Assembly: GCA_003427395.1 (NCBI GenBank)
Contig: BFEA01000020.1
Coordinates: forward strand, 3,051,886-3,115,490
From: Chara braunii
Lineage: Eukaryota > Plantae > Charophyceae
Direction of reading: 5' to 3'
Length of the DNA: 63,605 nucleotides
This document shows, one piece after another, positions 5,892-31,994 of this stretch (positions are counted from its first letter, which is position 1; every line of letters begins with the position of its first letter). The translations under genes were made by a program, and so were the position numbers. The notes below the pieces were generated by a model that did no database searches, was not told where the DNA came from, and worked only from the letters and a program-made list of their open reading frames with translations.

Positions 5892-5893
<2 letters not shown>

Positions 5894-5948
<55 letters not shown>

Positions 5949-6080
5949 NNNNNNNNNNNNNNNNNNNNNNNNNNNNNNNNNNNNNNNNNNNNNNNNNNNN
6001 NNNNNNNNNNNNNNNNNNNNNNNNNNNNNNNNNNNNNNNNNNNNNNNNNNNNNNNNNNNNNNNNNNNNNNNNNNNNNNNN

Positions 6081-6120
<40 letters not shown>

Positions 6121-6187
6121 CGCGTGTGTCTATCTGTGTGCGTGTTTGTGTGTGCGTGTGTGCGCGCATGTGTGTGTGTGTGTGTGT
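5894..6187. repeat. (CT)n and (GT)n microsatellites flanking an N-gap
   Basis: Direct reading. Similar (CT/GA)n tracts, often next to gaps, occur near 7963-8477, 10075-10139, 12117-12187, 14214-14262, 34423-34908, 37466-37631, 58552-58639 and 59150-59356. Confidence 0.95.
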
Positions 6188-6788: not shown

Positions 6789-6950
6789 CCCGCTCCCCTT
6801 AATGCTGCTTGTCCTTTCCCGTCTCTCCTGCATCTCGACCCATCCGCTCCCCTTACTGCTTGTCCCTTCCCGTCTCTCCTGCATCTCGACCCATCCGCTC
6901 CCCTTACTGCTGGTTGTCCCTCCCCGTCCCTCCCGCATCTCGACCCATCC
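6789..6950 (+). repeat. ~55-60 bp tandem repeat, about 3 copies, in C/T-rich sequence
   Basis: Unit ccgctccccttactgcttgtcccttcccgtctctcctgcatctcgacccat repeated. Confidence 0.85.
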
Positions 6951-7960: not shown

Positions 7961-8010
<50 letters not shown>

Positions 8011-8430
8011 NNNNNNNNNNNNNNNNNNNNNNNNNNNNNNNNNNNNNNNNNNNNNNNNNNNNNNNNNNNNNNNNNNNNNNNNNNNNNNNNNNNNNNNNNN
8101 NNNNNNNNNNNNNNNNNNNNNNNNNNNNNNNNNNNNNNNNNNNNNNNNNNNNNNNNNNNNNNNNNNNNNNNNNNNNNNNNNNNNNNNNNNNNNNNNNNNN
8201 NNNNNNNNNNNNNNNNNNNNNNNNNNNNNNNNNNNNNNNNNNNNNNNNNNNNNNNNNNNNNNNNNNNNNNNNNNNNNNNNNNNNNNNNNNNNNNNNNNNN
8301 NNNNNNNNNNNNNNNNNNNNNNNNNNNNNNNNNNNNNNNNNNNNNNNNNNNNNNNNNNNNNNNNNNNNNNNNNNNNNNNNNNNNNNNNNNNNNNNNNNNN
8401 NNNNNNNNNNNNNNNNNNNNNNNNNNNNNN

Positions 8431-8481
<51 letters not shown>

Positions 8482-8746
8482 TTCAACCATTGACATGTGA
8501 GGAGATTTGCTATGTCAAAGACAGAATCCGGCCCTAGGGTCAAGGTAGTCCAGTCCCACGTAGAACCCCTGTAGCATAGGGTGACAGTGTCTAGTAAGTC
8601 TGGTCCCAGGTCGAATCCATGTAGCATAGGGCCAGACAATTCAGTCCTTTTGGTCCGCTACCTGTGAAAATCGGTGTTCGTGGGTTCCAAGGATGTCAGC
8701 AAAAGGATGTCAGCAAACATCCTGGAAACGGATCGTCCAACATCAA

Positions 8747-8913
8747 AGCAGCTAAGTGGATATGCACATCTTGCTCCCCAATGCTGAGGTTACAGGAAGG
8801 CGCTACCCATCCCAGGACGAGCCAGACATTCTCCAGCATGCAAGCACGGATTCGAACCGGCGACCTCAGCCTCAAGAGCCAAGTATCTTAACCACTACAG
8901 CCAGGACATGGTG
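8747..8913 (-). mobile_element. tRNA-derived SINE, copy 1
   Basis: Minus strand reads TGGCTGTAGTGGTTAAG (Pol III A box) ... GGTTCGAATCC (B box) followed by a non-tRNA tail. Homologous to 9124-9290. Confidence 0.8.
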
Positions 8914-9123
8914 TTCAAAAGTGGAACCATACAGGTCGTGGTATTCACCCCACCCCTGCACGGCTGTAGTGTCCAACTCAACACACCACACACAACACCA
9001 CACAGACACGGCAAATTCTTGCACAACTCGCTCTTGCCAATCAGCACAAACCCTTACCATTGATACTCCCTCCTGTCCACCTATACGGGCCACATCTATC
9101 CCACGGTTGACGGGTGCTTCCAC

Positions 9124-9290
9124 AGCAGCTAAGTGGATCTGCACATCATGCTCCCCAACGCTGAGGTTACAGGAAGGCACTACCCATCCCACCACGAGCC
9201 CGACGTCCTCCACCGTGCAAGCACAGATTCGAACCGACAACCTCGGCCACAAGAGCCAGGTATCTTAACCACTACAGCCAGGACACGGTG
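9124..9290 (-). mobile_element. tRNA-derived SINE, copy 2
   Basis: Minus-strand head CACCGTG-TCCTGGCTGTAGTGGTTAAG...GGTTCGAATCT...CACGGTG has an acceptor-stem-like closure plus A and B boxes. The tail is shared with copy 1. Confidence 0.8.
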
Positions 9291-10070
9291 GTCTGACAGA
9301 ACGGAGAGGATCGTCCCATAGAAAAGGGCAAGAGCAGTTGATGCAGTTTATCAATTCCACTCATGCTTGCCGTGAAAGTGCTGCTCCACTCCAGTTCGAC
9401 CAAGTGCGAGTGCAAGAGTCAGAGAGACAGAAAGAGAGAGAGTGCGAGCCATGGTAGCTTAGTAGTCGACAAGCACTCGGAGCCATAGCTGTAGATGTAC
9501 CATAGATAGAAGAAGACATTCAGAAAGGCAGACAGAGTGGCCTGAGTGCCGAACCATGAGGGAGTTCTTCTTATTGGTGGTGCTGGCGCCTAGCCACAGA
9601 CTTGTTTGCATAATGCGGTGCCTTCCAGATCCTATCGGGTGGCTTTGGATTTTGTCTCTCTGTGTGTAGTGAAGTGTGCAACTCAGTGTGAACATGCGAT
9701 GTAGTTTTCAGGCAGTGAGTCCAGCTCATTACATACATACACTTCCACTCTGTGTTTTATTTCCGACATCTTAATGTAAATTGGATACAATATTACCATC
9801 TGAAAACATGAAGACAATGGACGAATCACGGGACGAGCGAAGGTAGTCTAGTCATCTGCCACTCTTACATTTGTCATCTCGAAGGTAGCCTGTCACAAAA
9901 ATTGTCCAACCACTTTTCACTCTAAAAGCCTCACAGGCAACTGTGGCATTTATCAGCCTCCAAAAATTTAGAAGGCTTGGCCTTGTAAACAGGGCCCACA
10001 TGTAGGCTGACCATCTCCGAGCAAAAAGGTAAGCAATGGTCCGGGAGGCTCCTTAAGTGGGGCTTTGCCC

Positions 10071-10139
<69 letters not shown>

Positions 10140-10559
10140 NNNNNNNNNNNNNNNNNNNNNNNNNNNNNNNNNNNNNNNNNNNNNNNNNNNNNNNNNNNNN
10201 NNNNNNNNNNNNNNNNNNNNNNNNNNNNNNNNNNNNNNNNNNNNNNNNNNNNNNNNNNNNNNNNNNNNNNNNNNNNNNNNNNNNNNNNNNNNNNNNNNNN
10301 NNNNNNNNNNNNNNCCCCCCCTCCTCCACGAGGATACCAATAACCTACATGATTCAAGAGGCTACATGCTTTCTGCCCGGCATTATACGTTCAAACTTCC
10401 AAGTCCCTATCTATAAGAGATCCACAGTTCCACCAAGGGGAAACACCGATGAGACAAGGGAACTCGACAAAACATAGAAACAAAGTCACGCATCAGAGGA
10501 TTTGTGCAGCAAGGAAGAGAAGGTCATGCATTCCTACATCTGACTACAGGTGAAACCAG

Positions 10560-10960
10560 GCACATCGAAGATGCAACGACAGAGGACTGACGGGAGAACA
10601 GTACAGCTACTTGGACCCTGACTGGCTGGTTCCATTCTTTGGTTGTGTCAATAGTCCCTATCATCTTCAAATAAAACATATGGCCATTATAGCTGTATTT
10701 GGGGCAACTATCGGTCTATAGATAACAGGGACAATGACCATGTGTTGTAGTCAGGGGAAGACAGCAGGAGCTTTGTACACTCACCACGTCATTATCAAGC
10801 TGCTCTCTCGATGGTATAGGGGGCTCGTAAGAGTTGGCGGTGAGGCTAGGAAGATTTGCCCTCCACATTCAAATCAGGGAGATCATGGGACAAGGTTCCC
10901 CTCTTCAGACCTATTCCTGCTCTGATGGACAGAGCAGCTCCATTGGACAGATAACCACCC
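10560..10960 (+). pseudogene. Highly decayed non-LTR (LINE) reverse transcriptase fragment
   Basis: Ordered motif remnants across frames: DGRTVQLL (PGPDG-like), GNYRSI (NYRPI-like), LVRVGG, GQGSPL../DLFLL (QGxPLSxxLFxL). Confidence 0.5.
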
Positions 10961-12315: not shown

Positions 12316-14210
12316 CACACACACACACAGCAAAAATGGGCCCGTCAACATTCATTAACATCTTCCATTTCTTGCGTCATCGACGAAGACTCCGTGGAAG
12401 GGTGGTGCAGACAAGCTTAGCGTACAAAGAATTCCTGCCTTCTGATGTCACACAGTAGCTGAAAACTAAACCACGCATTGCATGTGGGTGGGAGGCCTCT
12501 GGAAATGGTTGCATTGTAACGTGATGGTTATGGTAAAATACAAGCCCACGGCCCACATACAACGTGCAGTCGCAGAAAACTACACTGTGACAACTGCAAG
12601 CCGGGAAAATAAAATGCCTAAACTTTTCTGCACCGCATCGGTGCGCTGTCTTCTTCAAGCACATTACTTGATGATGTGATGCACGCATACAACAACGAAC
12701 AGAAGCCTCTCACATCCCCTCACCAACCCCACCCCTGCTCCCAAACAAGCGAAGCACCAGTCCAATTCCCACTACGATCGTCGGGCGCCAGCACACATCT
12801 GCAAGATGTCATCTGACAGAATCTCTGACAGGAGAATCGGCAACACTGCAAGAAATGGCGGATAATGGTGGCCTTTTCGTGCCCACAATTCCACCGAAGA
12901 GGAACATCACTGTGTAGTATGAAATGTAGCATTTTCCCTTGATGGCTTTCTACACGGCGGCCGCGTGCTCCTCACCCCCTTTCATAGCCTATGAGAATGT
13001 CCTGTTACGCGTCCGCATGTGCCATTCGAACGCTTTGCTCATTTTGAAACGTGGCGGAAATTCCATAGAGAACGTCTGCCCACAACCGACAATTCCAACT
13101 CGTCGCCACACCGCCACAATGAAACTACACGCGGCGTAGTGGGTCCCAGGCTTCAGTCAGGACAACAAAAAGAAAAGAATTGCCTTCCCTGCCGAGGATG
13201 GTGGAATGAGATAGGTAGGCCAACATTTTTTTCCCATTTTCCCCGTAAGAGGGATTACCCCTTTTTATCCCCACTGGATGTCTCTGGAGACTAAATCCCC
13301 CCTGGATGTCTCAGGAGACTAAGATGGAGAATGTACCTCCTGCCAGAACGTGGAGAGGTGAACACTGTAATAGAGAAGGAATCCAGATGGAGTAAGATCT
13401 GGCCTCGTCATCTCACCACTATAGCAGGTGTATCTTTCCATGCTCTAGTGGAACACAAATGCATTCTCCATTTTGCACATTTGGTGAGTGATGCGCCCAG
13501 GCCCTTGTTTCTCCGGAGAAGATCTGTTGTTCACAGCAGAATTTGCCGTCACGATAGCAAAAACGTTTTACTTGACTACGGCTTGCCACATCTTTTTGCC
13601 CCCCGGCTTGTGCCATCTCTATCTCTTACAAATTCATATCTTTTCGCCTTTCTCCTCTTCTTCTTTCACCCTCTGCACTCTCCTTACGAAGACGCACAAT
13701 GACGACGAGGATACCAAGGATTAGGAGGAAAAAGGACGGGAGCCAGTACCAGAGGAGGGAGAGGTGGGCGTGTGGGAGGAGACTGGCAAATGTACTGGGG
13801 TAGAAGACAAGGTGATGCATGATCATCTGAAGATGAGCGGTGCAGATGTCCAAGGAGCGCCAATGTGATGAACAGGACTCAAAACAATATTAGATAATGC
13901 GATGTAGCGCAGCTAAACTCAAAGATATGACCGGGCACATCAGATCCAGACTCAACTCACACAATCATCATCACACACGTCACACAGCAAGGAGGGAAAT
14001 CATACACAGAAGGGCCTTGCGAACACACATGGGGAGAAACCACGGATGATGAAGGGGGAGGACAGACGAAGATGGAGTGGGGAAATAGGACAAGAGTAGA
14101 ACTTGTAGTCATCCAAGAACTAGTCTCCCCGTCAAATGTCCAACCAATGTCTGTCCTCAAAAATGTCAAATCAGATCCTGGGCTCCACGAACCGAAAAAG
14201 TCACTGCCTG

Positions 14211-14264
<54 letters not shown>

Positions 14265-15043
14265 GAAGAAAAGAGGGAGGAGGAGAAGAAGAAGAAGAAT
14301 AGTGGCTATGGAAGGGCAGAGAAGAATCAGGAGAAGAAGATGAAGAACTCTCCTCTCTCACATGCTCCTGATGATGATGCCACAAATACTGACCCACGAA
14401 GGTGATGACTCACGATGCAGGTCGCTACTGAAGGCCGGTCCATGACTGGTATGAAGTCCCAGCTATGGCGCCCAGGTATCTCTCTTCCCTCGTGGACGTG
14501 GCCTCCGCCAATCTCCCCACTCCAGCCTACTCCTGTACTCCTATAACGCTGCTCAATCACAGCTCTCCCCAAACTGGCGCTGCTCAAGCAGCATGACGCC
14601 CAACTGAGGCTCCAGCCTGAATGTCCTCAAAGTGGAGGACTGCTGAGAGTCATCGGTCTGTGATCAGGACCGTCGGATCTGATGTCCGATCGATGGTCCT
14701 GATTGCAAAAAACGGCCTGCTTGGGTCCCTACCGGACGTCCAGGCAATCCTGCTGATGCAGCAGGGTCCTGAGGACTGCACCAGGCATGAACAGACACAT
14801 GCCTGGTCCAGTCCCACATACAGACAAATCTGAACCTGGGCTACAACGGCCGAAACTGAATCAAGCAGCGGAAATAATAAATGCTGGGGGCCTGGCCTGG
14901 AATATGGCCGTGGGCCTCCAGGTCGCTGACCAAAAATGGGTGCGCTGCCTGAAGTCCTGGAACAACCATCGGGCCCCAAAACAAGGCCAGTGTAGCCGCC
15001 TCAGCATGCTACACAAGGAGAGGGGACTAAGAGGCAGGAGTCA

Positions 15044-15080
<37 letters not shown>

Positions 15081-16586
15081 GGAGATGATAATCAGACGTA
15101 AAACCACAAGATATTTCTCTCGCAAGATGGAGCAAGAAAAAGGACTGGTGTCCGCAAGACTGCAGACTGGCGTTCACAAGACTGGAGATCCTTCTATCGA
15201 TCTAACGCTCTATCAATGTTCATTTATTTCAACGTCAAGATATTTTTGTGAAAAGTAGGAAAATGCGAAGAGTAGGAAAGAAGACTAACAACTGGCACTC
15301 TGGAAGATGATCACGGTTTGCTTCAAGATATGCAAGAGGGACATTGACTGGCTCCAAAGAGAAAGAGAGGATGGTCGGACAGAAAGCAGTTGCATTTGAT
15401 GGAGAATGTACCATCTGCCAGAACGTGGAAAGGTACACAATGTAATAGAGAAGGAAGAGTAAAATCCGGATTGGTTGGGATCATGACGGTCCGACAAACA
15501 TCAAGGTTCAGATCACTTCCTGGTATGTGAGCCATCTACCGACTTCCCCCGGACACAACGCACCCTCATTTTGACTATATGGGACCGGAACGATATCTTG
15601 TCTAGATTTGAAACCACGGTGCATTGTGTTCGATGGAAGATGGTAGTGATGCGGGGACGAATAGACTCCCTGGTCAATCTTGATGGTCCGCCCAATGGAT
15701 CAAGCAAATCGTAGTTTGATTTCTCACATCAAGCATCCAATCTTCAGGCCAAACCATCTGGTCCACTTGCCGTCCAGAGGATTGGTTGGTTGGTACCGGG
15801 ATGATCCGACCAATCGGGAATGACCTCTTTTCCCTTCATGATCAAACATCATAAACGAAGAAGGAAGTGAAGAGGATAACCCAGAGTTTAAAAAGTGACA
15901 AAGTGAAGGGAGTCACCCGGAGTGAAAAGCGAAAAATGAAAAAGTGAAAAACCAAGTGTCCAGACAGCAAGGGAGAGAGAACAAGGCCGACAATGCTCTC
16001 CCCTCTTCTTCTTCCAGTAGACTGACTTCTTCTCCTAAATGCTTCCGGCTCCTGTATTTGTGCTCCATTAGCGCACCTACATTTTGCACATCCGCACACT
16101 GAGACACTTTGAACTTGTATATGGGCGTAATCGTGGTCAGGTGAATTGGGACCTCGCTGTAAAGGCGGTCAAAATTCCTCCTGTGAGCATGGCTTCACTA
16201 AAAGTTTCAATTTTCACTTTCACAAGTAAGCGCAACCACCCAAGGAAGAGGGACTGATTCGAGAGCGATCCAGACAGAGACAAAACCAGATTGTCCCCAA
16301 CCACAGATCATTTATTTATAACAAAAATTTCAGGGAGCCCGGGGACCTCACAATTCAACCCGGAAAAAGGAGCCACTGGAAGCATCACTCAGCTTCGTTT
16401 CCACACGGTGGAACCGGAATCATCAATAGACAACATGTGAGCAAACATTCCTTCGATCAACACCCTAATACTTGACCATTCTCCTACCCATTATCAATCT
16501 TGAATAACATCCACTAGCCCTTAACCCTAAGAACTACTAACTAATCTACCGGCAGCGGTGGCAGAGCCTACCTCAGCTACCGGGTC

Positions 16587-17419
16587 TTAAACCACCAGTA
16601 CACGGCCTCAGCCTTGCAGCAAAATAACTTGCCGCCACAAGAAGTAAAAGGCGGGCTTGGGGGAGGGTCGGAGGACTCGGAGCATAAGAAGGTTTTCAAA
16701 TTTTTGGGCCCATGTCAAATCCGCACGTCCCAAAAAACAAAACATGTGTTGGCCGTGATTGCAGTTGGGTACACTTTTTGGAGTACTCGGTGTGAGTCTG
16801 CCCTCAGTGAGAGCGAAGAACACGGGGAGCACGACTGTCAGACACAAAAAAAGAACAAAAAAAAAAAAAGCCAACAAAGCTTCTGTCAAAGGTTTAAAGA
16901 CGTGAGTTGGGTTGTCTAGGCTCAAATAAAATTTCACTATATGTGGGAGCGTGCTAGCACAACTGTCAGACTCACAAAAAAGAACCAAAAAGAAAAGCCA
17001 ACAAAGCTTTGGCCGTGAAAGTGGTTGGATGCATTTCAATGCCGCTAGTGTGAGTATGCCCTCAGCGAGGACGTTTTGAGCAAGAGGAATATGCGCTGCC
17101 TTGCTGGCAGGGAAAGGAAGAAAAAAACAAAAGGAGAAAAAAAGAAAAAACAGCAACTTTTCCCTCTCCCCGTAATGGTGGTCAGATGCATTCTGGAAAG
17201 TGACCATTTGAGTATGCCCTCCATTACATCCTTCCATGACATCATTGATCTCTGGCATGTTTGTTCCTTTCTTTTTTTTTTTCCTTCAGTCCGACCGCCG
17301 GCACCGGTGCCACTTCCGAAATTCCCACTCCAGGTACCCTCACGCAGAAGGCTCGGAAAAGCGGCGCGCAGTGAGCAGGTAGCTTCGGGATTTTAGGTGC
17401 GGGTGTACTGGTGGTTTAA
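16587..17419. mobile_element. Non-autonomous TIR DNA transposon (MITE-like) bounded by TTAA
   Basis: TTAAACCACCAGTACAC at 16587 and its exact reverse complement GTGTACTGGTGGTTTAA ending at 17419. No transposase inside; internal repeated motifs. Confidence 0.75.
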
Positions 17420-19066: not shown

Positions 19067-20809
19067 GGTCACCGCCCCCCTTGAAAACCCCCCCTGAACT
19101 CACCGGGAGGGCACTTTCCAGGCGGAGGGTAGAGGGGTGGTTTCAGCTCTTCAAACCTACCAACTAAAAATACTAAAACTAAAAAAAGAATCGAATAGCT
19201 CTTTTCTATGAGGACACTTACCTTCCCCCCAGACTTCATCGTTCCATTCGAGCCACCAGCCAGGTAACAGCTGGTGATGCTAAACACTGCTAAGGGGAGG
19301 CAAAGTAGCATTATACGTTTCTTTTTGCTTTTTCTTCATTGACGACGACCATGACGTATCATCGTGGAACTGACCGGCCCAAGGTAATTCAAGAGATTCA
19401 TTCGACTAGCTCCATCCGGATTCGAGCTTACGTCTGTATTTCAACAGTTCACGAGAGTACCAGCTGCGTCAACAGTTCACGAGAGTACCAGCTGCGCTAG
19501 GCGCCATTGATGCACTATACGTTCCCGCACCGCTCTTTTTTATTTTCCCTCCTCTTCTTTTTATTCCCCCCCCCGCCCCCTCCCCCTCTTCCTTTTTTTG
19601 GATGTAAGATGCACTTCTTATCTTTTCCCCCTATTGAATGATCTTCCAATTCTATCTATTTGGATGTTGAATGGAGAAAACAGTAGACCTTGTAGCAGTG
19701 CAACCCTTTTTTGAAATTTCAGTATGAGAAAGAGTACTTAGGAATCTGGAAAGTCATTAGCTGAGACTTCCCGCAGGCAAGAGCCTATATGCTAAGCTGG
19801 CTAATGTTGTCAGTACTCCCGGTTGAATTGTGAGGTCCCCAGCTTCGAATGATTTTTTTAATAAATTGATTTTGATTTGGAAAAGGGAAAAAAAAAAAAA
19901 AAAAAAACACAGAAGAGACACGATCTCGAGAGCACCAACTAAGGGCATACTCACCTAGGACTTCTTTCCGTGTATCTCATCACAATTACGCCCGAGTCTG
20001 GATGTATCTGAGGGCAACTACGGCCGGAGGTCAGTCGATAAAGTTCTAGTGCTCTAAAGATCCATCCATAAAAGATAATGCCCTGCTTGGCTTGCAGGAA
20101 AAACGGGCACCAACCTCCCTACCGCCTTCCGGTTGGAAGCAGTCACAATGAGGGTGTTCGGGGGAAGACGGTAGGTCGGCCTCCATCGCTGATGTGTGTC
20201 CATTCTCCGAACCTTCCTGTCCTCCATCCCAGTTAACCCTCGGTCTTTCCTTCATCTCGTACGTCCTCATCCGCTCTCGTTATCCTGCCTACCTCCCTCC
20301 TAACCCATACCCTACTGACACTATGCCCACTATGCCCAGTTTGCCCGTTAACTCGTTATCCTGCCTGCCACCCTCCTAACCCATACCCTACTGACATTAT
20401 GCCCAGTTTGCCGTTAAATCTTTATTTCATTAAAACAATAAACCTTCCTGTCCTCCTTCCCCGTGAACCCTCAGTCCTTCCTTTCCCATGTACGTCCTCT
20501 TCCTCTCTCGTTAAACCTTCCTCATCACAATATCTTACCTACATATATATACAGGTAAGATACTGCGATGAGGAAGATTTACCGAGAAGAGAATTATATA
20601 CATATATCATACATAATACATATACATACATATGTATTGTCGCAAAGTTATCAGAGCGCAAAAGCGGAAAAAACAAAGGGAACAAAAAAGATATCAATTC
20701 ATGTTTTATCTTCTTACTTACAACTTTGCCTGTTCAGAACCTCTTGCGTACGGCCGCCCACGTGCCCGGTCACCCTTAGGCAGAGAGGGAGAAGAACACA
20801 ACAAACGAG

Positions 20810-20900: not shown

Positions 20901-21024
20901 CCTTGTTTGTTGTCCTCTTCTCCCTCTCTGCCTACGGTTTACCAGACAGTTCTGTTTGACGATATATACATATCTTTTTTGCTTTCTTTTGTTTTTTTTC
21001 GCTTTTGCGCGCTGGTAACTTTGT

Positions 21025-21395
21025 GATGATACGTCTTGGTTGCAGAATTCATCACCTATGCCATCAACATTATCGATCTATTGCAGCCGTCGCCGTCTGT
21101 GCCGAAGGGTGTCCAACATTTCCTCATTATACACATCCCTATCACCCAGATATCCGTTGTCCCTTTCGTGCTCAAGGACGCTATCAGGACTGCATGACGC
21201 CGCACTGTGATGAACGTCCTGCTGTTTTTTTAACATGTGGACAGCATGTCCTTTGTCAGGACTGTTTTGATGGGATGGTCCGTGCTAGACGTCCTGCTGA
21301 ATGTTGTGCTGAAGTAGCTCTCCTTGGGTATCCTTGTGTCATCCTCAGCGTGCCAGCCCTATCTCCCGGGGTGGGGGCTCCTCTTCCTGACTGGT
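21025..21395 (+). pseudogene. Inverted partial copy of the PLE RING-like finger region
   Basis: ORF 21005-21427 contains LGCRIHHLCHQH...CPF...CMTPHCDERPAVFLTCGQHVLCQDCFDG, near-identical to the 25455-25860 peptide. Confidence 0.85.
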
Positions 21396-24300
21396 CAATA
21401 GAATCAAGCGATCAGGAGCAACACTAATTGTAGGACAGATAAAAGAAAGAAAAAAAGTACAAATTTCTGGAGAAAAGAAAAAAAAAAAAAACAAGAAAAA
21501 AGGAAAAAAAGAAAAAAATATGTTGAACTTTGTAGTGACAGTGGCAATTGGTTTATCTGTGGGATGTGTTATTTGCTTTCTTCCTTTGTCTTTTCTTTGA
21601 CCTTTCTCTTTCTCTTGCCTCTGTGAGGTCTGGTTTCCTCCTCCTTTTCTTTACCTCTTTGCCTTCTGGCTGCGTTCAAGTGGGTCCTTGTGACACACGG
21701 GGATGGGGGCAGCCAGCGCTCAACCTGTCATCCACGTGGCTGGCCTTGAACGTAAGAGGTGATGAACAGGTGGGGCTTTCCTTCCTTACTTCTTTTCCTT
21801 TCCTTGTTTTGCTTTTTTTCGCCTTCGTGCTCTGATTCACAGTGTGACAATATCTATATATATATATAGTCAAACAGGACTCCCGGTAAACCGTAGGCAG
21901 AGAAGCAGAAGAGGACAACAAGTCTGTCACAGCTCCTCGTTCGCTGTCCTCTTCTCCCTCTCTGCCTACGGTTTACCGGGCGGTTCTGTTTGACACTATA
22001 TACATATATATTACTTCCATATGTTTACATATCAATATATAGACTTCCTTACCGCATTCCTTCTCTCTTTACTCATGCATTGCCTCTCCTTTCTCATTTC
22101 CAGATTGTTCAATCCTCAGTTCCATCCTTCGGGTGACATTATGGCGGTTGGGGAGAGAGGACAAGGGGTGCTCATGTCAGCAGGGTGAGAGTTGAGAGGG
22201 CTGTTCCACTTGGAGGGGGTGGAGCAGGAAGGAAGGGGGATCTTCGGCTCTGCAGGGGCGTACTTCAGGGCGCACTATATGCGACTGAGGGAGCAGGAGA
22301 GGTATTCTGGGGGCTGTTCTGAACTGGAGTGGGGAGGTGAGGGGGCGCCTTCCCGCAGAGGCAGTGAACAGACAGGGGGTTGTCTTTTGGGGGAGAGGAG
22401 TAATCCCTTTGGTTCTTGTGACCCCTTTACATGTAACTGAGACTTCAATAGGCGCTGAGTCTCCATGGGATTTCCCCTCATCCTGTGGGAATAGTAGGCG
22501 CTGAAATGCTCATGTGATTTTTTGGAATCTTTTGATTTCCTGTTTTTCCTAATTGAAAAATTATTCCAAGAAAAAAGAAATGCACAGCCGTTAAAATCGG
22601 AACGATGCACAGGGCACTCACAAATCGAGAAATGGTCCAATCCTAAATTTCCGCACTTCAATTCCTCCATTAGTCCTCCTTCCTCCTTACCCTGCTTTTT
22701 CTACGTCCGATGAAACTCCCATTGCGAGTCATTACAACCTCTCCTCCTTTCTCTTCCTCCCTCTCCCTTTTCCTTAAACCTTATAAACCTCCTCCACTCC
22801 TACCTCGCTTTCCTCTTGACTCTTTACCTACTTTCACCTCCCCTGTCCTTAATCCTTCTACACCTCCTCCACTCCTAACTTCCTTCTCCCTTTCGGTTTT
22901 TGACCTACTCTTCTCTCTCCCTCCCTTCCTCCCTTCTTGCTCCCTTTCTTTCATTCCTCTTCCCCATTTCATACCCCATAGCTCACCTTCTTCCTTTCCT
23001 CCCTTTTGTTCTTTGATTGCCTGGGAGGGAATCGCCACCCCTCCAGATCAGGGAGAATAAGGGATCTTGGATCCTATCCAAGACAACCTGGCGCTCTTGG
23101 CTATATATATTTGCAGACAAGAGTTTTGTCCTGGGTGGTCTTGTCCCGTTGTTTGGCCTGTGCAGGAGGGCCGGTGCTTGCATGTGGGACTTGTCATCTA
23201 GGATCTGTTTTTGGTGGTGTTGCTTGTTGCTCCCTGTTTTGTTGTATTTGGCTGTTCCCTTCCTCTTTTCTTTGCCTCTTTGCCCTTTGGCTGTGTGCAA
23301 GTGGGTCGATATGACACACGCGGGTGGGGGCAGCCGCCGCTCAACCTANNNNNNNNNNNNNNNNNNNNNNNNNNNNNNNNNNNNNNNNNNNNNNNNNNNN
23401 NNNNNNNNNNNNNNNNNNNNNNNNNNNNNNNNNNNNNNNNNNNNNNNNNNNNNNNNNNNNNNNNNNNNNNNNNNNNNNNNNNNNNNNNNNNNNNNNNNNN
23501 NNNNNNNNNNNNNNNNNNNNNNNNNNNNNNNNNNNNNNNNNNNNNNNNNNNNNNNNNNNNNNNNNNNNNNNNNNNNNNNNNNNNNNNNNNNNNNNNNNNN
23601 NNNNNNNNNNNNNNNNNNNNNNNNNNNNNNNNNNNNNNNNNNNNNNNNNNNNNNNNNNNNNNNNNNNNNNNNNNNNNNNNNNNNNNNNNNNNNNNNNNNN
23701 NNNNNNNNNNNNNNNNNNNNNNNNNNNNNNNNNNNNNNNNNNNNNNNNNNNNNNNNNNGGAAAACTCTACAGACTGTCGGTTCACACCCCATCACAAGCC
23801 AGCAAAACATCCACGAAACAAAGAAAGGTCTGTCACAGCCAAAAAATATATAGATATATAGATATATATCGTCAAATAGATATATATTGTCACATTGTGA
23901 ATCAGAGCGCAGAAGTGAAAAAAAGGGGAAAGAAAAAAGGAAAAGGAAAAAAGGGGAAGGGGAAGAGGTAAGGAAAGCTCCACCTGTTCATAAACTCTTA
24001 CGTACAAGGCCAGCCACGTGGATGACAGGTTGAGGAACTGCCCGGTAAACCGTAGGCAGAGAGAGAGAAAAGGGCAACAATATATATATATATCGTATAT
24101 GTCACAATGGAAATCAGAGTGCAAAGGCGAAAAAGACAGAACAAGAAAAAGAAAAAGAAGGAAGGAAAGCCCCACCTGTTTGTCACCTCTTACATACAAG
24201 GCCAGCCACGTGGATGACAGGTTGAGCGCTGGCTGCCCCCATCCCCGTGTGTCACAAAAACCCACTTGCCAGCCAAAAGGCAAAGAGGTAAAGAAAAGGC

Positions 24301-24529
24301 GGAGGAAACCAAACCTCACAGAAGAAGAAAGCCTATNAAACAGACGAAGCAAGTGACACATCCCACAGATAATCCAATTACCATCCCACAGAACATATTT
24401 TTCTTTTTTCTTTTTTCTCAGGTTTCTTTTTTTGTGTTTTTCCTTGGTTTCTTCTTTTATTTATTTATTTATTATCTTTTTACTCGTTTTTTTTTTTTTA
24501 ATCTGTTTCTTCTACACTTCATATGTCAC

Positions 24530-24810
24530 CCCCTCGGCAGATAGGACAACTACGGTGAGGATGAAGGGGATGTTCACAGGGATACCCAAGGAGAGTTGCG
24601 CTAGTACAGCATTCAGCCGGACGGCTAGCACAAACCATCCCATCGAAACAATCCCGACAGAGGACATGTTGCCCACATGTCAAGAAAACAGCAGGACGTT
24701 TGTCACAGTGCCGGCATCATGCAGTTCTGATAGCGTCCTTGGGAACAGAAAGGACAACGTACATCTGGATGATAGGGATGTGCACAATGAGGAAATGTTA
24801 GACACCCTTC
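24530..24810 (-). pseudogene. Partial copy of the PLE RING-like finger region
   Basis: DNA homology to 25480-25750 (ggacggctagcac..accatcccatc.aaaca). Confidence 0.8.
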
Positions 24811-24973
24811 CGCTGTTCAGAACCTCTTGCGTACAAGGCCGCCCACGTCGATGTAGGTTGAGCGGCGGCTGTATACTCTGCCTACGGTTTACCCGGCAGC
24901 TCTGTATGACTATATATATATTGTCACAATGGAAGCCAGAGCCCAAAGTCACACTGTAAATCAGAGCGCAAAG

Positions 24974-25041
<68 letters not shown>

Positions 25042-25454
25042 AAGGTACAAGGCCAGCCACATGGATGACAGGTTGAGCGCTGGCTGCCCCCATCCCCGTG
25101 TGTCACAAGGACCCACTTGCACGCAGCCAAAGGGCAAAGCGGTAAAGAAAAGGAGGAGGAGACCAGACCTCGCAGAGGCAAGAGAGAGAGAGAGAGAGGG
25201 ATCCAATCAAAGAAAAGACAAGGGAAGAAAGTAAATGACACATCCCACAGATAAACCAATTGCCACTGTCACTACAAGGTTCAACATGTTCTTTTATTTT
25301 CTCTCTTTCTTTCTTCTTGTTTTCTTTTTCTTTTCTTCAGAAATTTGTACGTTTTTTAATTCTTTCTTTCTTTTTCTTTTTTGTTTCAACTTTTTCTTTC
25401 TTGTTTCTTCAACTCCACATCTGTTGCTCCTGATCGCTTGATTCTATTGATCAG

Positions 25455-25860
25455 TCAGGAAGAGGAGCCCCCACCCCGACAGATAGGACAGGCACGCTGG
25501 GGATGACGTGGATGTTCACAAGGATACCCAAGGAGAGCTACTTCGGCACAGCATTCAGCAGGACGGCTAGCACGGACCATCCCATCAAAACAGTCCTGAC
25601 AAAGGACATTCTGTCCACATTTCAAAAAAACAGCAGGACGTTCATCACAGTGCGGCATCATGCAGTCCTGATAGCGTCCTTGAGCAGAAAAGGGACAACG
25701 AATCTGCGTGATAGGGATGTGTACAATGAGGAAATGTTGGACACCCTTCGGCACATACGGCGGCGGCAATAGATTGATAATGTTGATGGCATAGGTGATG
25801 AATTCCGCAGCCAAGAAGCACCGCGTCCCTGTCCCGACAGGTGTCACACGAGAGTCGATC
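25455..25860 (-). pseudogene. Tandem RING-like zinc fingers at the C-terminus of the PLE protein
   Basis: CDTCRDRDAVLLGCGIHHLCHQH...IRCPF, then CMMPHCDERPAVFL(K/T)CGQ(N/H)VLCQDC...CPICRGG. This follows the RING-HC pattern C..C...CGH..C..C...CPxCR with a Cys/His-rich insertion. Confidence 0.72.
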
Positions 25861-26318
25861 AATAATCCAGAATAAAGTATGATTCGGTAATGCAGACAGA
25901 AATTCATTTATGTTGAAAATAGCCTGAATCATTATCCCACCATCCCACAGTTCCCACTGGGCAGCTGCACGAACGAGCGCCATATAATGCCCGTGTCTGT
26001 GCAAAATACAGGCAGAAATGTGAGGATGGTCATTAAGGTCATCGCCTGGCATCCCATGATGCATAAGAAGGTGGCGACCGTTGAATGCTAGCTGTAAGAC
26101 ATTTACAGTAAAGCCTCCTGAGGTAGTATAATTACTACCTTCAGGAGGTGGACCATTATGGTCATACGACAACTTTCAAAAGCGTCAAGCTGATAAGCAA
26201 TCGTGACAAAATGGGAAGCAGTATAACATTGACGCTGATAAGCCTGTAGGCAGACATTTGTGGCTGTCAAGCCACAAGTATTTGGTAGATCTGCCCGCAG
26301 ATCCGATTCGGTCACCAC
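25860..26318 (-). pseudogene. Josephin (ataxin-3/MJD family, peptidase C86)-like deubiquitinase domain, one frameshift near 26160-26175
   Basis: NTCGLTATNVCLQ, IAYQLDAFE, SNYTTSGGFTVNVLQLAF and CILHRHGHYMALVRAAAQWELWDG align in order with ataxin-3 LCAQHCLNNLLQ, IAHQLDEEE, GNMDDSGFFSIQVISNAL and FICNYKEHWFTVRKLGKQWFNLNS (recalled sequence). Putative triad: Cys 26274-26276, His 25987-25989, Asp 25942-25944. Confidence 0.82.
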
Positions 26319-26479
26319 TGGAAAGCTAGGTCTGATCTGGCGGGGTCAGCGCATGAATGACGAACGCCGTCGACGTGGCAGAGCAGGCTATCGGTAAGAC
26401 AAAGAACCCCGCAAATTAGCATCAACACGACGTCGAGAGGAAGGAGGAGAGAATGAGCGAACCTGCCGACGTCCCAATA

Positions 26480-26629
26480 TGGACAACGAAGACAAAGGAG
26501 GGGCCGGTCTCAGCCGGCGTGGGGGGGTAAATGAAGAAGAAGAAGAAGAGGGAGAAGACGACAAAGAAACGGATGATGGAGTAGAAGAAAGGGAAGTAGA
26601 AGAAGAAGAAGAAGAGGAGGAGGAGGGAA

Positions 26630-26667
<38 letters not shown>

Positions 26668-27050
26668 CGGCGACGAAGAAGAAGAGGATGCTGGCAAAGC
26701 GGAAGTGAAAGGGGAAGGGGAAGGAGGAAGAAGGGGAGGGGGAGAAGAAGGGGGAAGTGGAGAGGAAGAGGGAGAAGACACAGGAGCGGGAGATGGACAA
26801 GAAGGGGGAGGGGGGAGAGGAAGGCAGAGGGGAAGTGGAAGGGGAAGGAGGAGGAGGAGGGGGAGGGGGAGAAGTGGGGAAGTGGAGAGGCAGAGGGGGA
26901 AGACAGAGGAGGGGAAGGTGAACAAGAAGGGGGAGGGGAGGCGGAGGAGGATGAGAAGATGGAAAGGAGGAAGGGGGAGGAGGAGGGGGAGAGGGAGAAG
27001 GAGAAGCGAAGGAAAGGGAAGGAGAAGGTGGAAGAGGATGATGCACGGAC
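26480..27050 (-). repeat. Low-complexity pyrimidine-rich (minus strand) tract encoding a Pro/Ser-rich linker between RT and the peptidase domain
   Basis: GA-rich on the + strand; open in several frames; lies between the RT thumb and the Josephin domain. Confidence 0.7.
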
Positions 27051-27059
27051 CAGCGACGC

Positions 27060-28056
27060 ATACGTCGAAACCATTGTGTAAGACGAGTTACATGTATAGG
27101 TTGTCAACGTTGACGAGCACGAATGTAACAAGTTCATCCTCGAGCCAATGTCGAAGGAGGATGGCCACGGGAAAGCAAACGGCGGACAAGCATGGTTGCC
27201 GCAGTTCTGAAATCATGCCAATTGTCACAAATCTGCTCAAACCGCGTAAGCTGGCCGGTGAACACACCTGCAGGCTGATGAGACGGAATGTTTGACGTTG
27301 CACCATGCAACTGTCTTGTCAAACACACTCAATCGGAGAGATCCGTCTGCTCGTGTCTGCATTTCGCACCTAAAACGGTGCACGAGCCATCAGCCGCAGT
27401 GGTCTCCTTCCATTCAAGACCATAATGGGTTGGCGACGGTGGCAGACAACGAAAAGTAAGAACATCATCAGTGAACCCATAAGTGAAAACATATCGGCGA
27501 GCTGCAGAGGGATCCACACGCTGCAGGTCGTCCACGTACTGTGCCTCATCCAATAGAGTGTGAGGTTAGCAATCTCAGGATCAGCGTTTGTACCCATAGG
27601 AATACCGACGTCTTGATGACGAACAAGGCCATCCGCTGTAAATAAATATGTATTAGTAACAATAAACCGAAGATGTTGAAGAATGTCAGACACAGAAAGA
27701 GTGTCAGATCCCGTATCCGTAGTCCATTCCCCTGCACGCGGTCCACGGACCACCATACGAAGCAACACAGGATGAGCGTGTCCGTGTATGCTGCTGTGAC
27801 TGTGCAAGAGCATAGGCATGTGCCTCATCAACAGCCTTAACAACATTGTCAAGAATCCGTTGATGAGAAAGATTAGTATACATAGTAGTGAAATCGACCG
27901 TATGGGGAGAGAAGCTTTATTCTTTTTGAGGTCAAGGATGACCTCGTCACTGCTCTGGACAATCCAACATCGTCGAATACCTTCGGATTGGAAAAGTTTA
28001 CTATCTTTTTCACGGAGAGTGCGGAAGACGCCTTGACACAGAACTGTATACATTGT
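27060..28056 (-). pseudogene. Penelope-like reverse transcriptase, 5'-truncated and frameshifted
   Basis: WIVQSSDEV; after a frameshift DFTTMYTNLSH (about 27866-27897); NTYLF...HQDVGIPMGTNADPEIANLTLY; YGFTDDVL; thumb region PAGVFTGQLTRFEQIC...DF...LVRRLLSRGH. These fit the Naiad/Chlamys RT patterns DFxTLYTxIPH, GIPMGTN and GVxxSQLxRF. Confidence 0.9.
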
Positions 28057-28694
28057 CAAAGCGCAAAAGCGAAAAAAAAAAGAAAAAGACAGAAAACAAA
28101 GAATAAATGAATCGTTTTTTTCTCTTCTTCCTTACAACTCCCCCTGTTCAGAACATCTTGCGTACAAGGCCGCCGACGTGGATGTAGGTTGAGCGGCCGC
28201 TGCCCCCACCCCCCTGTGTCATATCGACCCACTTGCACACAGCCAAAAGGCAAAGAGGCAAAGAAAGAGGAAGGGAACAGCCAAATATAACAAAACAGGG
28301 AGAAACAAACACAAACAAATCCTAGATGACAAGTCCCACATGCAAGCACCGCCCCCTCCGTCACAAGACCAACCAGGATATCAAAACACCCTTGCCTGCA
28401 AACAAGCAAGCAATCCCAAACAACAAACCTTTCGTACTCACCAGCGACTCTGCGTCAACTCCAAGAATCCTTTGCGATTGTTATTTGTTGCAAAAACTGG
28501 TATCGTTTTAATCTTTCTACTGCTTCGCTGTTCCAAACTAAAATACTGGGACGCCACCGACGGCAAAAAAAATACAAAAAAGACAATCCCAGATGGTGAT
28601 TCCCACAGAAAAACACCGCCCCATCGCACCAAGGCCGAACAACGGGAAACAGCCAACCAGGATGCCAAACAGAGCTGCCCAGTAAACCGTAGGT

Positions 28695-28745
28695 AACCTG
28701 TTTCGTCGGAGTTCCACCGACTCATCAGGAGGCTGAACCCTCAAA
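28695..28745 (-). ncRNA. Hammerhead ribozyme core in the PLE terminal repeat
   Basis: Minus strand CTGATGA-GTCGG-tggaact-CCGAC-GAAA-CAGG: intact conserved core and perfect 5-bp stem II. The stem I/III partner is disrupted in this copy. Confidence 0.7.
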
Positions 28746-29829
28746 AGTCTGCAGAATCCCCTAACTGATTACACTGTAAGTGATAATCCATCTTAACCCC
28801 GGCTGTGGTTAAGCATCAACGACTGCCCGACAACTGATACCCCTCTGAGGTGGTGGGCACCAGACACTGCCCTCAAGGTACCTGTAACGAAAATCAAAGC
28901 AGACTATCCCTCACCCACACCAGATGGACAACTTTACAGACTGTCGATTCACACCCCATCACAGCCAGTAATATATGGCCTATCCAGGTCATGATGAGCG
29001 ACGGGAACAGGTTTTGGATATTTCTGGCCAAGTATTTAAAATAGGAAAGCAGTGGTCCCTATTGGGTACTCCTTCCTTCGATCTAATACTCGATACCCCT
29101 CGATGATTCCTTCGTTTCTTCCATTTTCGTCATTCCTTATACCCCTCAATGATTCCTTCGTTTCCTCCATTTTCGCCATTCCTTGATCCATGCCCCCCTC
29201 TCCCCCCTCCCTATTCTCTTGCCTTCAATGATCACATGGGCGAAGGGCTTTTTTCCCCTCCCTTTATTATTTGTTTACAGGAGGAAAGAGATTCAGTTAC
29301 TCAAAACGGGGAAATTAGCAGCCATAAGGTGTATATCAGCGGGGGAGAAGTATACAGAGAGTGCCTTTATGATTTGCTGGAAGAGGAGGAATTCCGACGA
29401 GCGCCGAATGGAAAGAAAGGAAGCGGCACAATGCGTAATATATTGTCACATTGTGAATCAGAGCGAAAAAAAGGGAAAAGAAAAAAGGAAAAGGAAAAAA
29501 GGGAAAGGGAAGGAGGTAAGGAAAGCTCCACCTGTTCATAACCTCTTACGTACAAGGCCAGCCACGTGGATGACAGGTTGAGCGCTGGCTGCCCCCATCC
29601 CCGTGTGTCACAAGGACCCACTTGCACGCAGCCAAAAGGCAAAGAGGTAAAGAAGGGGAGGAGGAAACCAAACCTGACAGGGAAAGAAAGATAGGGAAAG
29701 AAAGATAATCCAATTATCACAAAGCAAATAACACATCCCACAGATCAACGTATCTTTTTTCTTTTTTTCTTTTTTTCTTTCTTTTTTCTTTTTTTCTTTT
29801 TTTCTCTTTTTCTTTTCTTCTTTTTCTCT

Positions 29830-30288
29830 TTACCTGCCCCCACCTCGGCAGATAGGACAGCTACGGTGAGGATGATGTGGATGTTCACAAGGATGCCCAA
29901 GGAGAGCTGCGCCAGCACAGCATTCTGCAGGACGGCTAGCACGAACCATCCCATCAAAACAGTCCTGACAGAGGACGTGTTGTCCACATGTCAAAAACAC
30001 GGCAGGACATTCATCACAGTGCGGCGGCATCATACAGTTCTGATAGCGTCCTTGGGCACAATAGGGACAACGTATATCTGGGTGATAGGGATGTGTACAA
30101 TGAGGAAATGTTGGACACCCTACAGGACAGACGGCNGCAGTCGCNNTANNNTGATAATGGNTATGGCATAGATGATGCATTCCACAGCCAAGGCGCACCG
30201 CATCTCTGTCCCGACAGGCGTCACACGAGAGTCGGTCAATAATCCAGAATAAAGTATGATTCGACAACGCTCGCAAAAATTCATTCAC
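29830..30288 (-). pseudogene. Copy of the PLE Josephin C-terminus plus both RING-like fingers in one open frame
   Basis: ORF MNEFLRALSNHTLFWIIDRLSCDACRDR...CPYC...CGQHVLCQDC...CPICRGGGR shows that the two fingers were contiguous in one frame. Confidence 0.88.
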
Positions 30289-31994
30289 GTCGAAATATAT
30301 GTGCCAAGTTCATCCCCTTGCCTTTTCCTCCTCGATCCCGGCTGCAGGACTAATGGCATGAGATAGGAGAAGCAAGGAGAGAGAAAGGGGATAAGAGGGG
30401 GAGAGCGCAAGAAGCAAGGAGAGAGTAGGGGACTAAGGAGCGGGCTGAGGGCAGCGTTCTCACACCAGAAACCTTTTCGGCTCAGTTCGAGACCTGATTG
30501 CGGCCAGGTACACAGGGGCGGCCATAATTTGCAGTCAGATGCACCCAGAAATGTCCTAGTGTGAATACGCTCTGAGACGGGAGGCGCGCGAGTCCGAGAA
30601 CAGGGGCTTCTGCAAGTTCTCGGATATTTTTTCAGAACAGATAACGACCGGACGGGAAAACGGAGAACATTTTGCAGAGTTGCACACAAACGGTCGTTTG
30701 ACTAGACACGAGTTGGTAAGAAAGCGGGCGCGCGCTAAGGGTCTCGCTCCACCACTCACCATATGCATAAAAGATAGAAACGATGACCGTGTGTCTTTCC
30801 ATGTTTTAGAGGAAGATCACTCTAATTTTGCACATTTGGTGAGCGGCGCAGTGAGGCCTTAAAAGGACAAAAACGATGAGGCGTTGTTGAGAAAGGAAGG
30901 TGCTACGAGAGCGTAGGAGGGGAGAAAAGATGGATGGAGAAAAGAACGTGTCATGCTTGCTTCACGGAGAAACAAGATAAATAACGAGCACTCGTTTAGA
31001 TCGCATCGAACAATTTTTTACAATCAAATTTTAACAAGGGGCGATCGAAGCGAAGAAAACGGACAGAAAAACACAGAGGAATCGATCAGCCACCGAGAGC
31101 TTCCGTTGATCACTTCGCCGGGACATTGGGTTCACGGAGCTTGCGAAAATGAAACAGATAGATTGTCAGGCGAAATGGCGCATACAAAAATTCGGATTGC
31201 TTATACATCAACACGCCCTCATCATGAATGTAACCGGACCGCAACAGTGTACATTCATGGAGCTTAACGATATCAAGACCTTCATCATGACAGTATTGCA
31301 CGCTCATCAGGGACGAAGCCAGAACAGAAGACAGCTAGGGAAGTGCTTGGGAGAACCCCGAGCACAAAACAACTCGTCCTTGACTGAACCGGACCCGAAC
31401 CGAGCTTGTATACCTTCACAATGAGGATGAGTTGACGTCGCGAAAAGCCGAGGAAAGCGCTTGGGGAGCACGGTGTCTCTCTCAGAGTACGGTGATAACT
31501 GAGACATGTCCAGGCAGAAAAACAGTCATGATGGAAACTGTCATTTGTTCGTTTCGGTCATTCCTCCGTTTGACGGATCAGTCAGCAAAGACGATATATG
31601 AATGAATTGAACACCTCGAACGAATCGAGATAGTCGCTCCGTAACCCAACCAATGTAGGGAGAGAACATTTGATTCATGCATAACCGGATTATCGAGTGA
31701 ACAGATAACAAAATGTTTAAGAAACTGAATGGAGTTCATGAATAACCGTTAAGAGAGCGAATAGAACGAATGGTACAGACATGTATAACCTAAGTTGAGA
31801 GAATGAGTCCAAACCCGAATGGAATCAAATGAACACAATAGTCGCTCAGAAACTGACAACAGAGCTCTGGAAAGAAACCAAAGGAACAAGCGGAATATAC
31901 ATACCACCGGCTAGGAGGCAGAGAGAGTCGAGCTCTCGCGACGGAGGCTCAACTCGCTGAGCAACCAAAAAAGGAACACACAGAACAGAACCCT

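Follow-up and report, generated by a model that had tools for sequence, protein, structure and literature searches.

A probable Chlamys-type Penelope-like retrotransposon copy in Chara braunii with a Josephin-like protease domain and duplicated RING-like Cys/His units

The 63,605-nucleotide stretch of Chara braunii DNA analysed here (the window) carries, at 25455-28062 on its minus strand, a degenerate coding region in which a 5'-truncated reverse transcriptase (RT) is followed by a CT-rich low-complexity spacer, a Josephin-like cysteine protease domain and two Cys/His units (Table 1). The RT motifs, the linker, the Josephin-like domain and the two RING-like fingers ending in CPICR that were listed in a preliminary description were all found on this strand in the frame translations. 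The same translations contain at least five frameshifts and three in-frame stops, in agreement with the earlier suspicion that the copy is frameshifted and probably dead. Its 5' end lies at about 28062, within the RT, and a GIY-YIG domain is present in the related locus L004, as expected from the earlier proposal that truncation had removed an N-terminal GIY-YIG. The frames were analysed as pieces, together with naturally intact ORFs from other copies, rather than as repaired frames or a consensus. An exact look-up of the window ORF in protein records returned no match.

Table 1. Features of the window copy, of further copies in the window and of three related loci (coordinates in the window unless a locus is named)
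Feature	Coordinates	Strand	Remarks
RT, 5'-truncated	27134-28062	-	Covers motifs A, B, C and E, from behind RT2 as far as the thumb; two alternating frames, one internal stop
RT piece	27901-28056	-	Frame translation
RT piece with DFTTMYTNLSH	27704-27910	-	Frame translation
RT piece with GIPMGTN	27556-27768	-	Frame translation
RT piece with FTDD	27329-27565	-	Frame translation
RT piece with GVFTGQLTRF	27134-27325	-	Frame translation
CT-rich low-complexity spacer	26340-27137	-	Pro/Ser-rich in the frame entering the Josephin N-half; repeat families D3 and D7
Josephin-like domain, N-half	26172-26339	-	Candidate catalytic Cys codon 26274-26276
Josephin-like domain, C-half	25828-26175	-	Other frame; His 25987-25989, Asp 25942-25944
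Cys/His unit 1	25678-25851	-	RING-like, His at ligand position 6; end frameshifted (alignments)
Cys/His unit 2	25458-25670	-	RING-like, ends CPICRGG; one His ligand replaced by Asn, one Cys by Ser; sub-threshold Pfam RING matches at E = 0.015–0.04
Stop codon	25455-25457	-	Directly after unit 2
3' UTR of window copy	25045-25454	-	A-rich stretch, then conserved block common to all copies (four-copy alignment; blastn to window, L003 and L004)
3' UTR block fragment	28138-28265	-	Immediately precedes the truncated RT, head-to-tail; a partial tandem resembling a pLTR
Hammerhead ribozyme motif	28695-28750	-	Between two copies; sub-threshold Rfam Hammerhead_3 match
Second copy	29470-30357	-	5'-truncated inside Josephin; both Cys/His units 29833-30234, 3' UTR 29470-29840
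Third copy	24140-24813	-	5'-truncated inside Cys/His unit 1, with 3' UTR
Fourth copy	20999-21818	+	Opposite strand; Cys/His units 20999-21340, 3' UTR 21473-21818
Locus L003	RT 6249-7537; Josephin 8463-8717; Cys/His 9500-9835		
Locus L004			GIY-YIG ORF, CxC/GxKY ORF, intact 397-aa RT, assembly gap, intact Cys/His ORF (10396-10905)
Locus L005			EN, CxC, RT, then Cys/His; separately Josephin, then several Cys/His units

The window RT aligns with the intact RT ORF of L004 (7134-8324) at 51–66% identity (tblastn, E = 2.6e-69). Chlamys elements are characterized by CxC and GxKF/Y motifs between the endonuclease (EN) and the RT, a DK(G) motif whose third residue varies, and an extended IFD-like segment separating RT3(A) from RT4(B) (PMC8557442). 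The distance from the Asp of motif A to the Gly of motif B is 94 residues in the L004 RT and ∼95 in the window RT, apparently a long segment of the sort described in that paper for this group of Penelope-like elements (PLEs). Direct reading of the L004 ORF at 6180-7049 identified the CxC motif as DCQCRK and the GxKY motif as GSKYR, and its RT ORF opens with a DK motif with a variable third residue (VPVDKT). Upstream, the ORF at 5431-6462 contains a GIY-YIG signature (GVIY...YIGQT) with a sub-threshold Pfam match (E = 7e-4, 20.3 bits, cut-off 22.6), and L005 has an EN-like match upstream of its RT. The GIY-YIG, CxC, GxKY and DK motifs are absent from the truncated window copy. Neither the RT pieces nor the intact L004 RT matched Pfam (RVT_1) or the PDB, and a homologous-protein search with the window RT ORF found nothing. 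A weak precomputed match of the relative P0007 to PF26215 (HTH_animal), and a language-model search with a 152-aa RT piece that points to the same family, serve as leads only; a 78-aa RT piece was uninformative. The family is thus placed among the PLEs, as a putative member, on the basis of motifs read by eye and the sub-threshold GIY-YIG match.

The four copies in the window share a common 3' end and differ at their 5' ends, which fits the frequent 5' truncation and partial tandems (pLTR) of PLEs. The block fragment upstream of the truncated RT is 85% identical over 129 nt to the 3' UTR of the second copy (blastn). The possibility that the repeat next to the RT is an independent SINE was considered and rejected, since the four-copy alignment and blastn identify it as the 3' UTR of the element itself.

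Three further Chara braunii loci (L003, L004 and L005) are diverged copies with the same domain order at 33–67% amino-acid identity, as would be expected from the single ancestral ORF proposed earlier. Among the loci read there are at least three lineages, 32–70% identical, and the relatives P0002, P0005 and P0006 (the last named “hypothetical protein CBR_g29507 [Chara braunii]”) lie on BFEA01 contigs of assembly GCA_003427395.1. An RT is found upstream in one of the four Josephin/Cys-His copies of the window, and the two parts are set apart by a long run of low-complexity sequence, as might be seen if the RT and the Josephin/RING region were unrelated neighbours, or if one copy had captured a host gene fragment. 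We consider this most improbable. The copies without an RT have the same 3' end and are, therefore, simply 5'-truncated, and the published element described below has the same layout. Chance juxtaposition was rejected because the order is repeated in all three loci. The spacer differs in repeat content between copies (e.g. L003 7537-8400).

In every comparison, pN was lower than pS, and well below it, in all three domains. Where dS was unsaturated, dN/dS was below 1 throughout, with values of 0.17–0.34 for the Josephin-like domain, 0.10–0.37 for the Cys/His units and 0.06–0.57 for the RT. Judged by these substitution rates, purifying selection has acted on both accessory domains roughly as strongly as on the RT, across lineages that are as little as 32% identical. 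The recurrence of the domain order, along with this selection, indicates that the element needs the accessory domains and that they are not passengers.

The layout of RT, Josephin and two RING-like units had been put forward as novel; this part of the preliminary description does not stand, as the Josephin/Cys-His architecture is already known. Chlamys-1_cBra from Chara braunii has an ORF of ∼1,800 residues whose C-terminal part carries a weak Josephin motif and an unknown motif with conserved C and H residues (Craig, Yushenova, Rodriguez and Arkhipova 2021, PMC8557442). The window family shares with it the host species, the N-terminal GIY-YIG, CxC and DK motifs, an apparently long A–B stretch in the RT, the ORF length (5431 to 10905 in L004, or 1,825 codons), and the C-terminal order of a weak Josephin followed by the conserved C/H motif. 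Both also have internal tandem repeats, truncated 5' ends, partial tandem arrangements and a high copy number. As this comparison is with the published description rather than with an aligned consensus, the two may be the same or sister families. We conclude, with a probability of roughly 85%, that the window feature is a dead insertion, frameshifted and truncated at its 5' end, of a Penelope-like retrotransposon of the Chlamys type (GIY-YIG at the N-terminus), and that its kind is the one described under the name Chlamys-1_cBra; no new kind of element is present in the window. Beyond Craig et al. (2021), the present analysis adds the RING-like reading of the Cys/His motif (duplicated, with 12 ligands), the conservation of the protease triad and the evidence for selection.

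The N-half of the window protease domain is 80% identical to residues 35–90 of the relative P0001, and its C-half is 69–71% identical to the same protein. The profile comparison upholds the Josephin reading in part: Josephin is the only Pfam family above noise for this domain, with no competing family, and one related copy (L003:11044) reaches the gathering score (26.4 and 26.1 bits, cut-off 26), but the window copy itself is below it (E = 0.0059, 16.9 bits). P0001 and P0002 score 25.2 and 21.6 bits, and the L005 protease copy gave no match to Pfam Josephin. Residues 56–163 of P0001 align to profile positions 6–121, with the candidate Cys at the first aligned position. The window copy, P0001 and the 32%-identical L005 copy all retain the Cys-His-Asp triad, as the preliminary description had led us to expect; in P0002, the third residue is Asn. 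Cys, His and Asp/Asn follow one another in an order and at distances that resemble those of the Josephin/MJD deubiquitinases (ataxin-3, JOSD1/2; PF02099). However, the third triad residue is Asp here and Asn in ataxin-3, sequence identity to solved Josephins is only 16–21%, and, unlike in the Josephin/MJD proteins, the domain is a putative protease located C-terminally in a retrotransposon polyprotein. A metagenome scan with P0001 identified no relative.

The structure model of the protease domain (pLDDT 52) is too poor for a firm fold claim. The best structural matches of this low-confidence model are ataxin-3 and JOSD2 (VIA Z of 6.1, 5.4 and 5.3, down to 4.7; Foldseek E ∼5e-3), followed closely by other DUB folds; the Foldseek list for the same pLDDT 52 model is headed by the USP-like TssM, with many USP and UCH chains after it. 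On an alternative reading, the domain is not related to Josephins but is a deubiquitinase of another papain-fold type, such as a minimal USP-like one. Its N-T-C and G-H-Y motifs resemble the USP Cys and His boxes, and PDB sequence searches with P0001 and two Josephin-domain profiles retrieved no Josephin chain. We regard a USP-like origin as improbable, given that Pfam matches only Josephin, twice at gathering score, that Josephin structures lead the VIA ranking, and that the domain size of ∼165 residues fits a Josephin. In addition, His and Asp are 15 residues apart and a QW stands at +10/+11, exactly as in ataxin-3.

The two Cys/His units are an internal duplication (hhalign probability of 97.4%, E = 1.2e-11). 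Each consists of ∼65 residues with 12 conserved Cys/His ligand columns. Columns in the RING order of C3HC4 or C3H2C3 fingers (C, C, C, H, C, C/H ... C, C) are present in both units and in all lineages, and the last loop, between ligands 6 and 7, holds four more that are also conserved (C, C, H, H). The number of ligands implies three predicted zinc sites per unit. The ligand spacing (C-C...C-x2-H-x2-C-x2-C/H...C-x2-C), the terminal CPxCR and the predicted β-β-α core are like those of RING fingers of the C3HC4_3 or arenavirus Z type. A joint profile of both units gave 18 matches in the PDB, all to RING fingers, the best being arenavirus Z (E = 0.002). In contrast to typical RINGs, the four extra ligands bring the total to 12, and the profile scores are below the Pfam cut-offs: RING-clan families match unit 2 only, with E = 0.0076–0.4 and at most 16.6 bits against cut-offs of ∼27. 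The model of the Cys/His block (pLDDT 42) is too poor for a firm fold claim, with a β-β-α pattern visible. A homologous-protein search with P0003 found only P0003 itself. Thus, the C/H motif left unnamed in the published Chara element appears to be a duplicated RING-like module, resolved here into two, and up to ∼4, homologous units.

An intact element would encode one polyprotein of ∼1,800 residues, in which a GIY-YIG endonuclease, the CxC/GxKY/DK region, the RT and a variable repeat spacer would precede the Josephin-like papain-fold protease (Cys-His-Asp) and the duplicated ∼65-residue module. The protease might strip the protein or RNP of the element itself, or target chromatin, of ubiquitin or of a ubiquitin-like tag, while the RING-like modules might recruit an E2 or bind in a zinc-dependent manner. 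Together, they could shield the retrotransposition complex against degradation or silencing. A full pairing, in which tandem RING-derived three-zinc modules and an active Josephin-type deubiquitinase form a ubiquitin-editing pair (an eraser plus a writer or reader) kept under selection across stonewort PLE lineages and acting on the RNP or on target chromatin, is a tentative and rather unlikely proposal. The selection, the conserved triad and the RING-like reading of the C/H motif make of a brief published mention a hypothesis that can be tested, namely that transposition of a Penelope-like element may depend on a deubiquitinase and a RING-type module; its importance would hinge on a demonstration of the activities.

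The same element could use these domains differently, with the protease cutting its own long polyprotein in cis, in the manner of viral papain-like proteases, and the Cys/His modules serving as nucleic-acid- or chromatin-binding zinc fingers for target choice rather than as E3-type RINGs. The length of the polyprotein and the variable repeat spacer between RT and protease would suit such roles, as would the 12 conserved ligands per unit, compared to eight in a RING, the RING profile matches under every Pfam cut-off, and a unit count that varies from 2 to ∼4 by lineage. Against this, the zinc module matches only RING fingers in the PDB and Pfam, and known Josephins act as ubiquitin isopeptidases rather than as polyprotein proteases. 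On balance, we view these roles as possible, if somewhat doubtful.

The Dualen/RandI non-LTR retrotransposons of green algae, as correctly stated in the preliminary description, also encode a Josephin-like cysteine protease in a retroelement polyprotein (Kojima and Fujiwara 2005, cited in PMC8557442). According to the latter account, this protease was proposed to interfere with protein degradation. Compared by description, Dualen/RandI differs from the window PLE in being a LINE with two endonucleases, and the account in PMC8557442 mentions no RING-like module for it.

A hammerhead ribozyme motif lies between two of the window copies. Its Rfam score, from scans divided at positions 26700 and 26760, is 29.7 bits (cut-off 48.5, E = 0.00026), its core (CUGAUGA...GAAA) is intact, and a pattern search gave one match against zero expected. 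Hammerheads have been reported for Chlamys-2_cBra and not for Chlamys-1 (PMC8557442); unlike in published Chlamys-1, the motif adjoins the 3' UTR of some copies here, and in L003 it comes after the 3' UTR block in two copies that carry the Josephin domain.

The minus-strand element in the window belongs to a family with one polyprotein layout, which comparison of its copies shows to be conserved and under selection. When 25400-28400 was translated in all three minus-strand frames, every block listed in the preliminary description was recovered. The copy is, as proposed there, frameshifted and dead, requiring at least 5 frame changes and containing at least 3 in-frame stops; 2 zinc-ligand positions are substituted.

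Coordinates of element features in the window and at three other Chara braunii loci (L003, L004 and L005)
Feature	Positions	Strand	Remark
RT piece	27901-28056	-	frame translation
RT piece, DFTTMYTNLSH	27704-27910	-	frame translation
RT piece, GIPMGTN	27556-27768	-	frame translation
RT piece, FTDD	27329-27565	-	frame translation
RT piece, GVFTGQLTRF	27134-27325	-	frame translation
CT-rich low-complexity stretch	~26340 to 27137	-	between RT and protease
Cysteine-protease-like domain	26172-26339 + 25828-26175	-	frame translation, two frames
Triad codon Cys	26274-26276	-	
Triad codon His	25987-25989	-	
Triad codon Asp	25942-25944	-	
Cys/His unit 1	25678-25851	-	frame translation
Cys/His unit 2	25458-25670	-	frame translation; ends CPICRGG
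Stop codon	25455-25457	-	after unit 2
Extra copy of 3' part	20999-21340	+	
Extra copy of 3' part	24528-24813	-	
Extra copy of 3' part	29839-30357	-	
3' UTR block fragment	28138-28265		head-to-tail, directly upstream of truncated RT
Hammerhead motif	28695-28750	-	intact CUGAUGA...GAAA core
miRNA-family matches	20500-20595, 21862-21997	both	
L003 RT	6249-7537	one strand for all three L003 domains	
L003 spacer	7537-8400		~19-aa tandem repeat
L003 Josephin-like	8463-8717	as RT	
L003 Cys/His	9500-9835	as RT	
L003 hammerhead motif	~12360-12420	+	
L003 hammerhead motif	~12760-12800	-	
L004 element span	5431 to 10905		1,825 codons
L004 gene model (P0006)	8001-29984		chimera
L005 element lineage	13047-17057, 21009-21996, 27591-29027		third, far more diverged
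L005 gene model (P0005)	1001-76457		chimera

The copies surveyed across the window include a single RT. All four window copies share a common 3' end (stop codon, A-rich stretch and a conserved ~370-nt 3' UTR block) and differ solely in their start points, as is typical of a retroelement that undergoes 5' truncation. The UTR fragment just ahead of the truncated RT matches the partial-tandem (pLTR-like) arrangement that PMC8557442 describes for Penelope-like elements.

Independent, diverged copies at three loci (L003, L004 and L005) exclude a chance juxtaposition of RT with the protease and zinc region. The order RT, Josephin-like domain, Cys/His region is genuine and recurs at these loci. At L004, one ORF reads GVIY...YIGQT, a second carries DCQCRK (CxC) and GSKYR (GxKY), and an uninterrupted RT ORF of 397 aa begins VPVDKT and spans motifs A to E. 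Beyond an assembly gap lies an intact Cys/His ORF ending CPICREGFT. A GIY-YIG domain N-terminal to the RT, as proposed earlier, can be read at L004, although its Pfam score is just below the cut-off (E = 7e-4). L005 contains EN, CxC, RT and then Cys/His units. At a separate place in this locus, about four Cys/His units, rather than two, follow a Josephin-like domain that is 32% identical and retains its triad. Because the spacer repeats differ between lineages, the RT-protease linker is free to change, in contrast to the conserved domains on either side.

Exhaustive querying of a set of 1.84 billion representative proteins with the 175-aa window ORF returned only five relatives. Relatives P0002 and P0005 lie on GCA_003427395.1 (BFEA01) contigs, as does P0006 ('hypothetical protein CBR_g29507 [Chara braunii]'), found with an RT ORF of L003. 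The chimeric gene models, which are annotated Chara braunii genes, incorporate element fragments: in one, a SpoU methylase is joined with a piece of RT, in the other an amino-acid transporter with part of a Josephin-like domain. Uninterrupted family ORF fragments also occur on short metagenome contigs (L001, L002 and L006; ENA ERZ27272674, ERZ27271960); these fragments (P0001, P0003 and P0007) share 45-70% identity with the window copy, and their source may be a different charophyte or copies of younger age.

We consider the protease to be Josephin-type (probability roughly 0.85), although its homology to Josephin is weak, in line with the literature. Josephin is the sole Pfam family above noise: against a gathering score of 26, the L003:11044 copy reaches 26.4 and 26.1 bits, with P0001 at 25.2, P0002 at 21.6 and the window ORF only 16.9. 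In P0001, the first aligned residue is precisely the first Cys, which falls on profile position 6. The His-Asp distance is 15 residues, with QW at +10/+11, the same spacing as between His119 and Asn134 of ataxin-3. The Cys-His-Asp triad recognized earlier is kept in the window copy, P0001 and the 32%-identical L005 copy; in P0002 the third residue is Asn. Another papain-fold deubiquitinase is improbable: USP-like and UCH enzymes occur among the structural matches of a poor AlphaFold model (pLDDT 52), and the family's own profile retrieved no Josephin chain from PDB sequences, but ataxin-3 and JOSD2 match that model best (VIA Z 6.1, 5.4 and 5.3; Foldseek E ~5e-3) and Pfam gives Josephin alone.

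The two Cys/His units are mutually homologous (hhalign probability 97.4%, E = 1.2e-11), and a joint alignment identifies 12 conserved ligand positions common to both across lineages. These read C, C, C, H, C, C/H, then C, C, H, H, then a closing C-x2-C. The first six and last pair follow the C3HC4/C3H2C3 order of RING fingers; the four additional ligands imply a third zinc site. All 18 PDB chains matched by the joint profile are RING fingers (best arenavirus Z, E = 0.002, then RNF4, RNF168 and cIAP1). Pfam gives exclusively RING-clan matches, all below cut-off and in unit 2 only (E = 0.0076-0.4). The model, with a strand-strand-helix in each unit, is poor (pLDDT 42). RING derivation is our best reading, and a probable one, with no implication of E3 activity.

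Natural copies were compared pairwise as they stand (Nei-Gojobori counts). pN is far below pS throughout (e.g. 0.18 versus 0.59, window copy versus P0001). In comparisons with unsaturated dS, dN/dS is 0.17-0.34 for the Josephin-like domain, 0.10-0.37 for the Cys/His units and 0.06-0.57 for RT; since neutral changes accumulate in dead copies, constraint on active lineages is at least as strong as measured. From these sequences, the element appears to need its accessory domains. Ubiquitin or a similar tag may be the substrate of the protease, while the zinc modules may bring in an E2 or contact a partner; this could shield the retrotransposition complex or place a mark on chromatin at the target. 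The main alternative, that the protease processes the long polyprotein in cis and the zinc fingers bind targets, is possible but rather doubtful.

No tool assigned the RT to a class: Pfam RVT_1 and PDB searches were blank, even for the intact L004 one. P0007, a relative, has a weak PF26215 match, a lead only. The Penelope-like assignment rests on the N-terminal GIY-YIG, the CxC/GxKY/DK motifs, the 94 aa between RT motifs A and B, and the truncation and tandem habits, features that Craig et al. (PMC8557442) treat as diagnostic. The same paper notes Josephin-like proteases in Dualen elements and very high copy numbers of Chlamys families in C. braunii (Craig, Yushenova, Rodriguez, Arkhipova 2021). 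The architecture, first taken as novel, is already known, since species, length, order and both motifs agree with the element published there (Chlamys-1_cBra). Our literature search found no later paper naming the Cys/His motif; what is added here is its interpretation as a duplicated RING-like module with 12 ligands, together with the evidence for selection and for conservation of the triad.

The window hammerhead scores 29.7 bits with Rfam Hammerhead_3 (cut-off 48.5). Those of L003 lie directly 3' of the UTR block in two copies that carry the Josephin-like domain, and are oriented as these are. In PMC8557442, hammerheads are reported for Chlamys-2_cBra but not for the Josephin-bearing type; either 3' ends are shared or elements are interleaved. 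Beside the plus-strand copy, Rfam matches precursors from numerous plant miRNA families that are unrelated to one another. Every score is well short of the cut-off (58 bits at best versus 96), and these stretches resemble plain long hairpins or palindromes.
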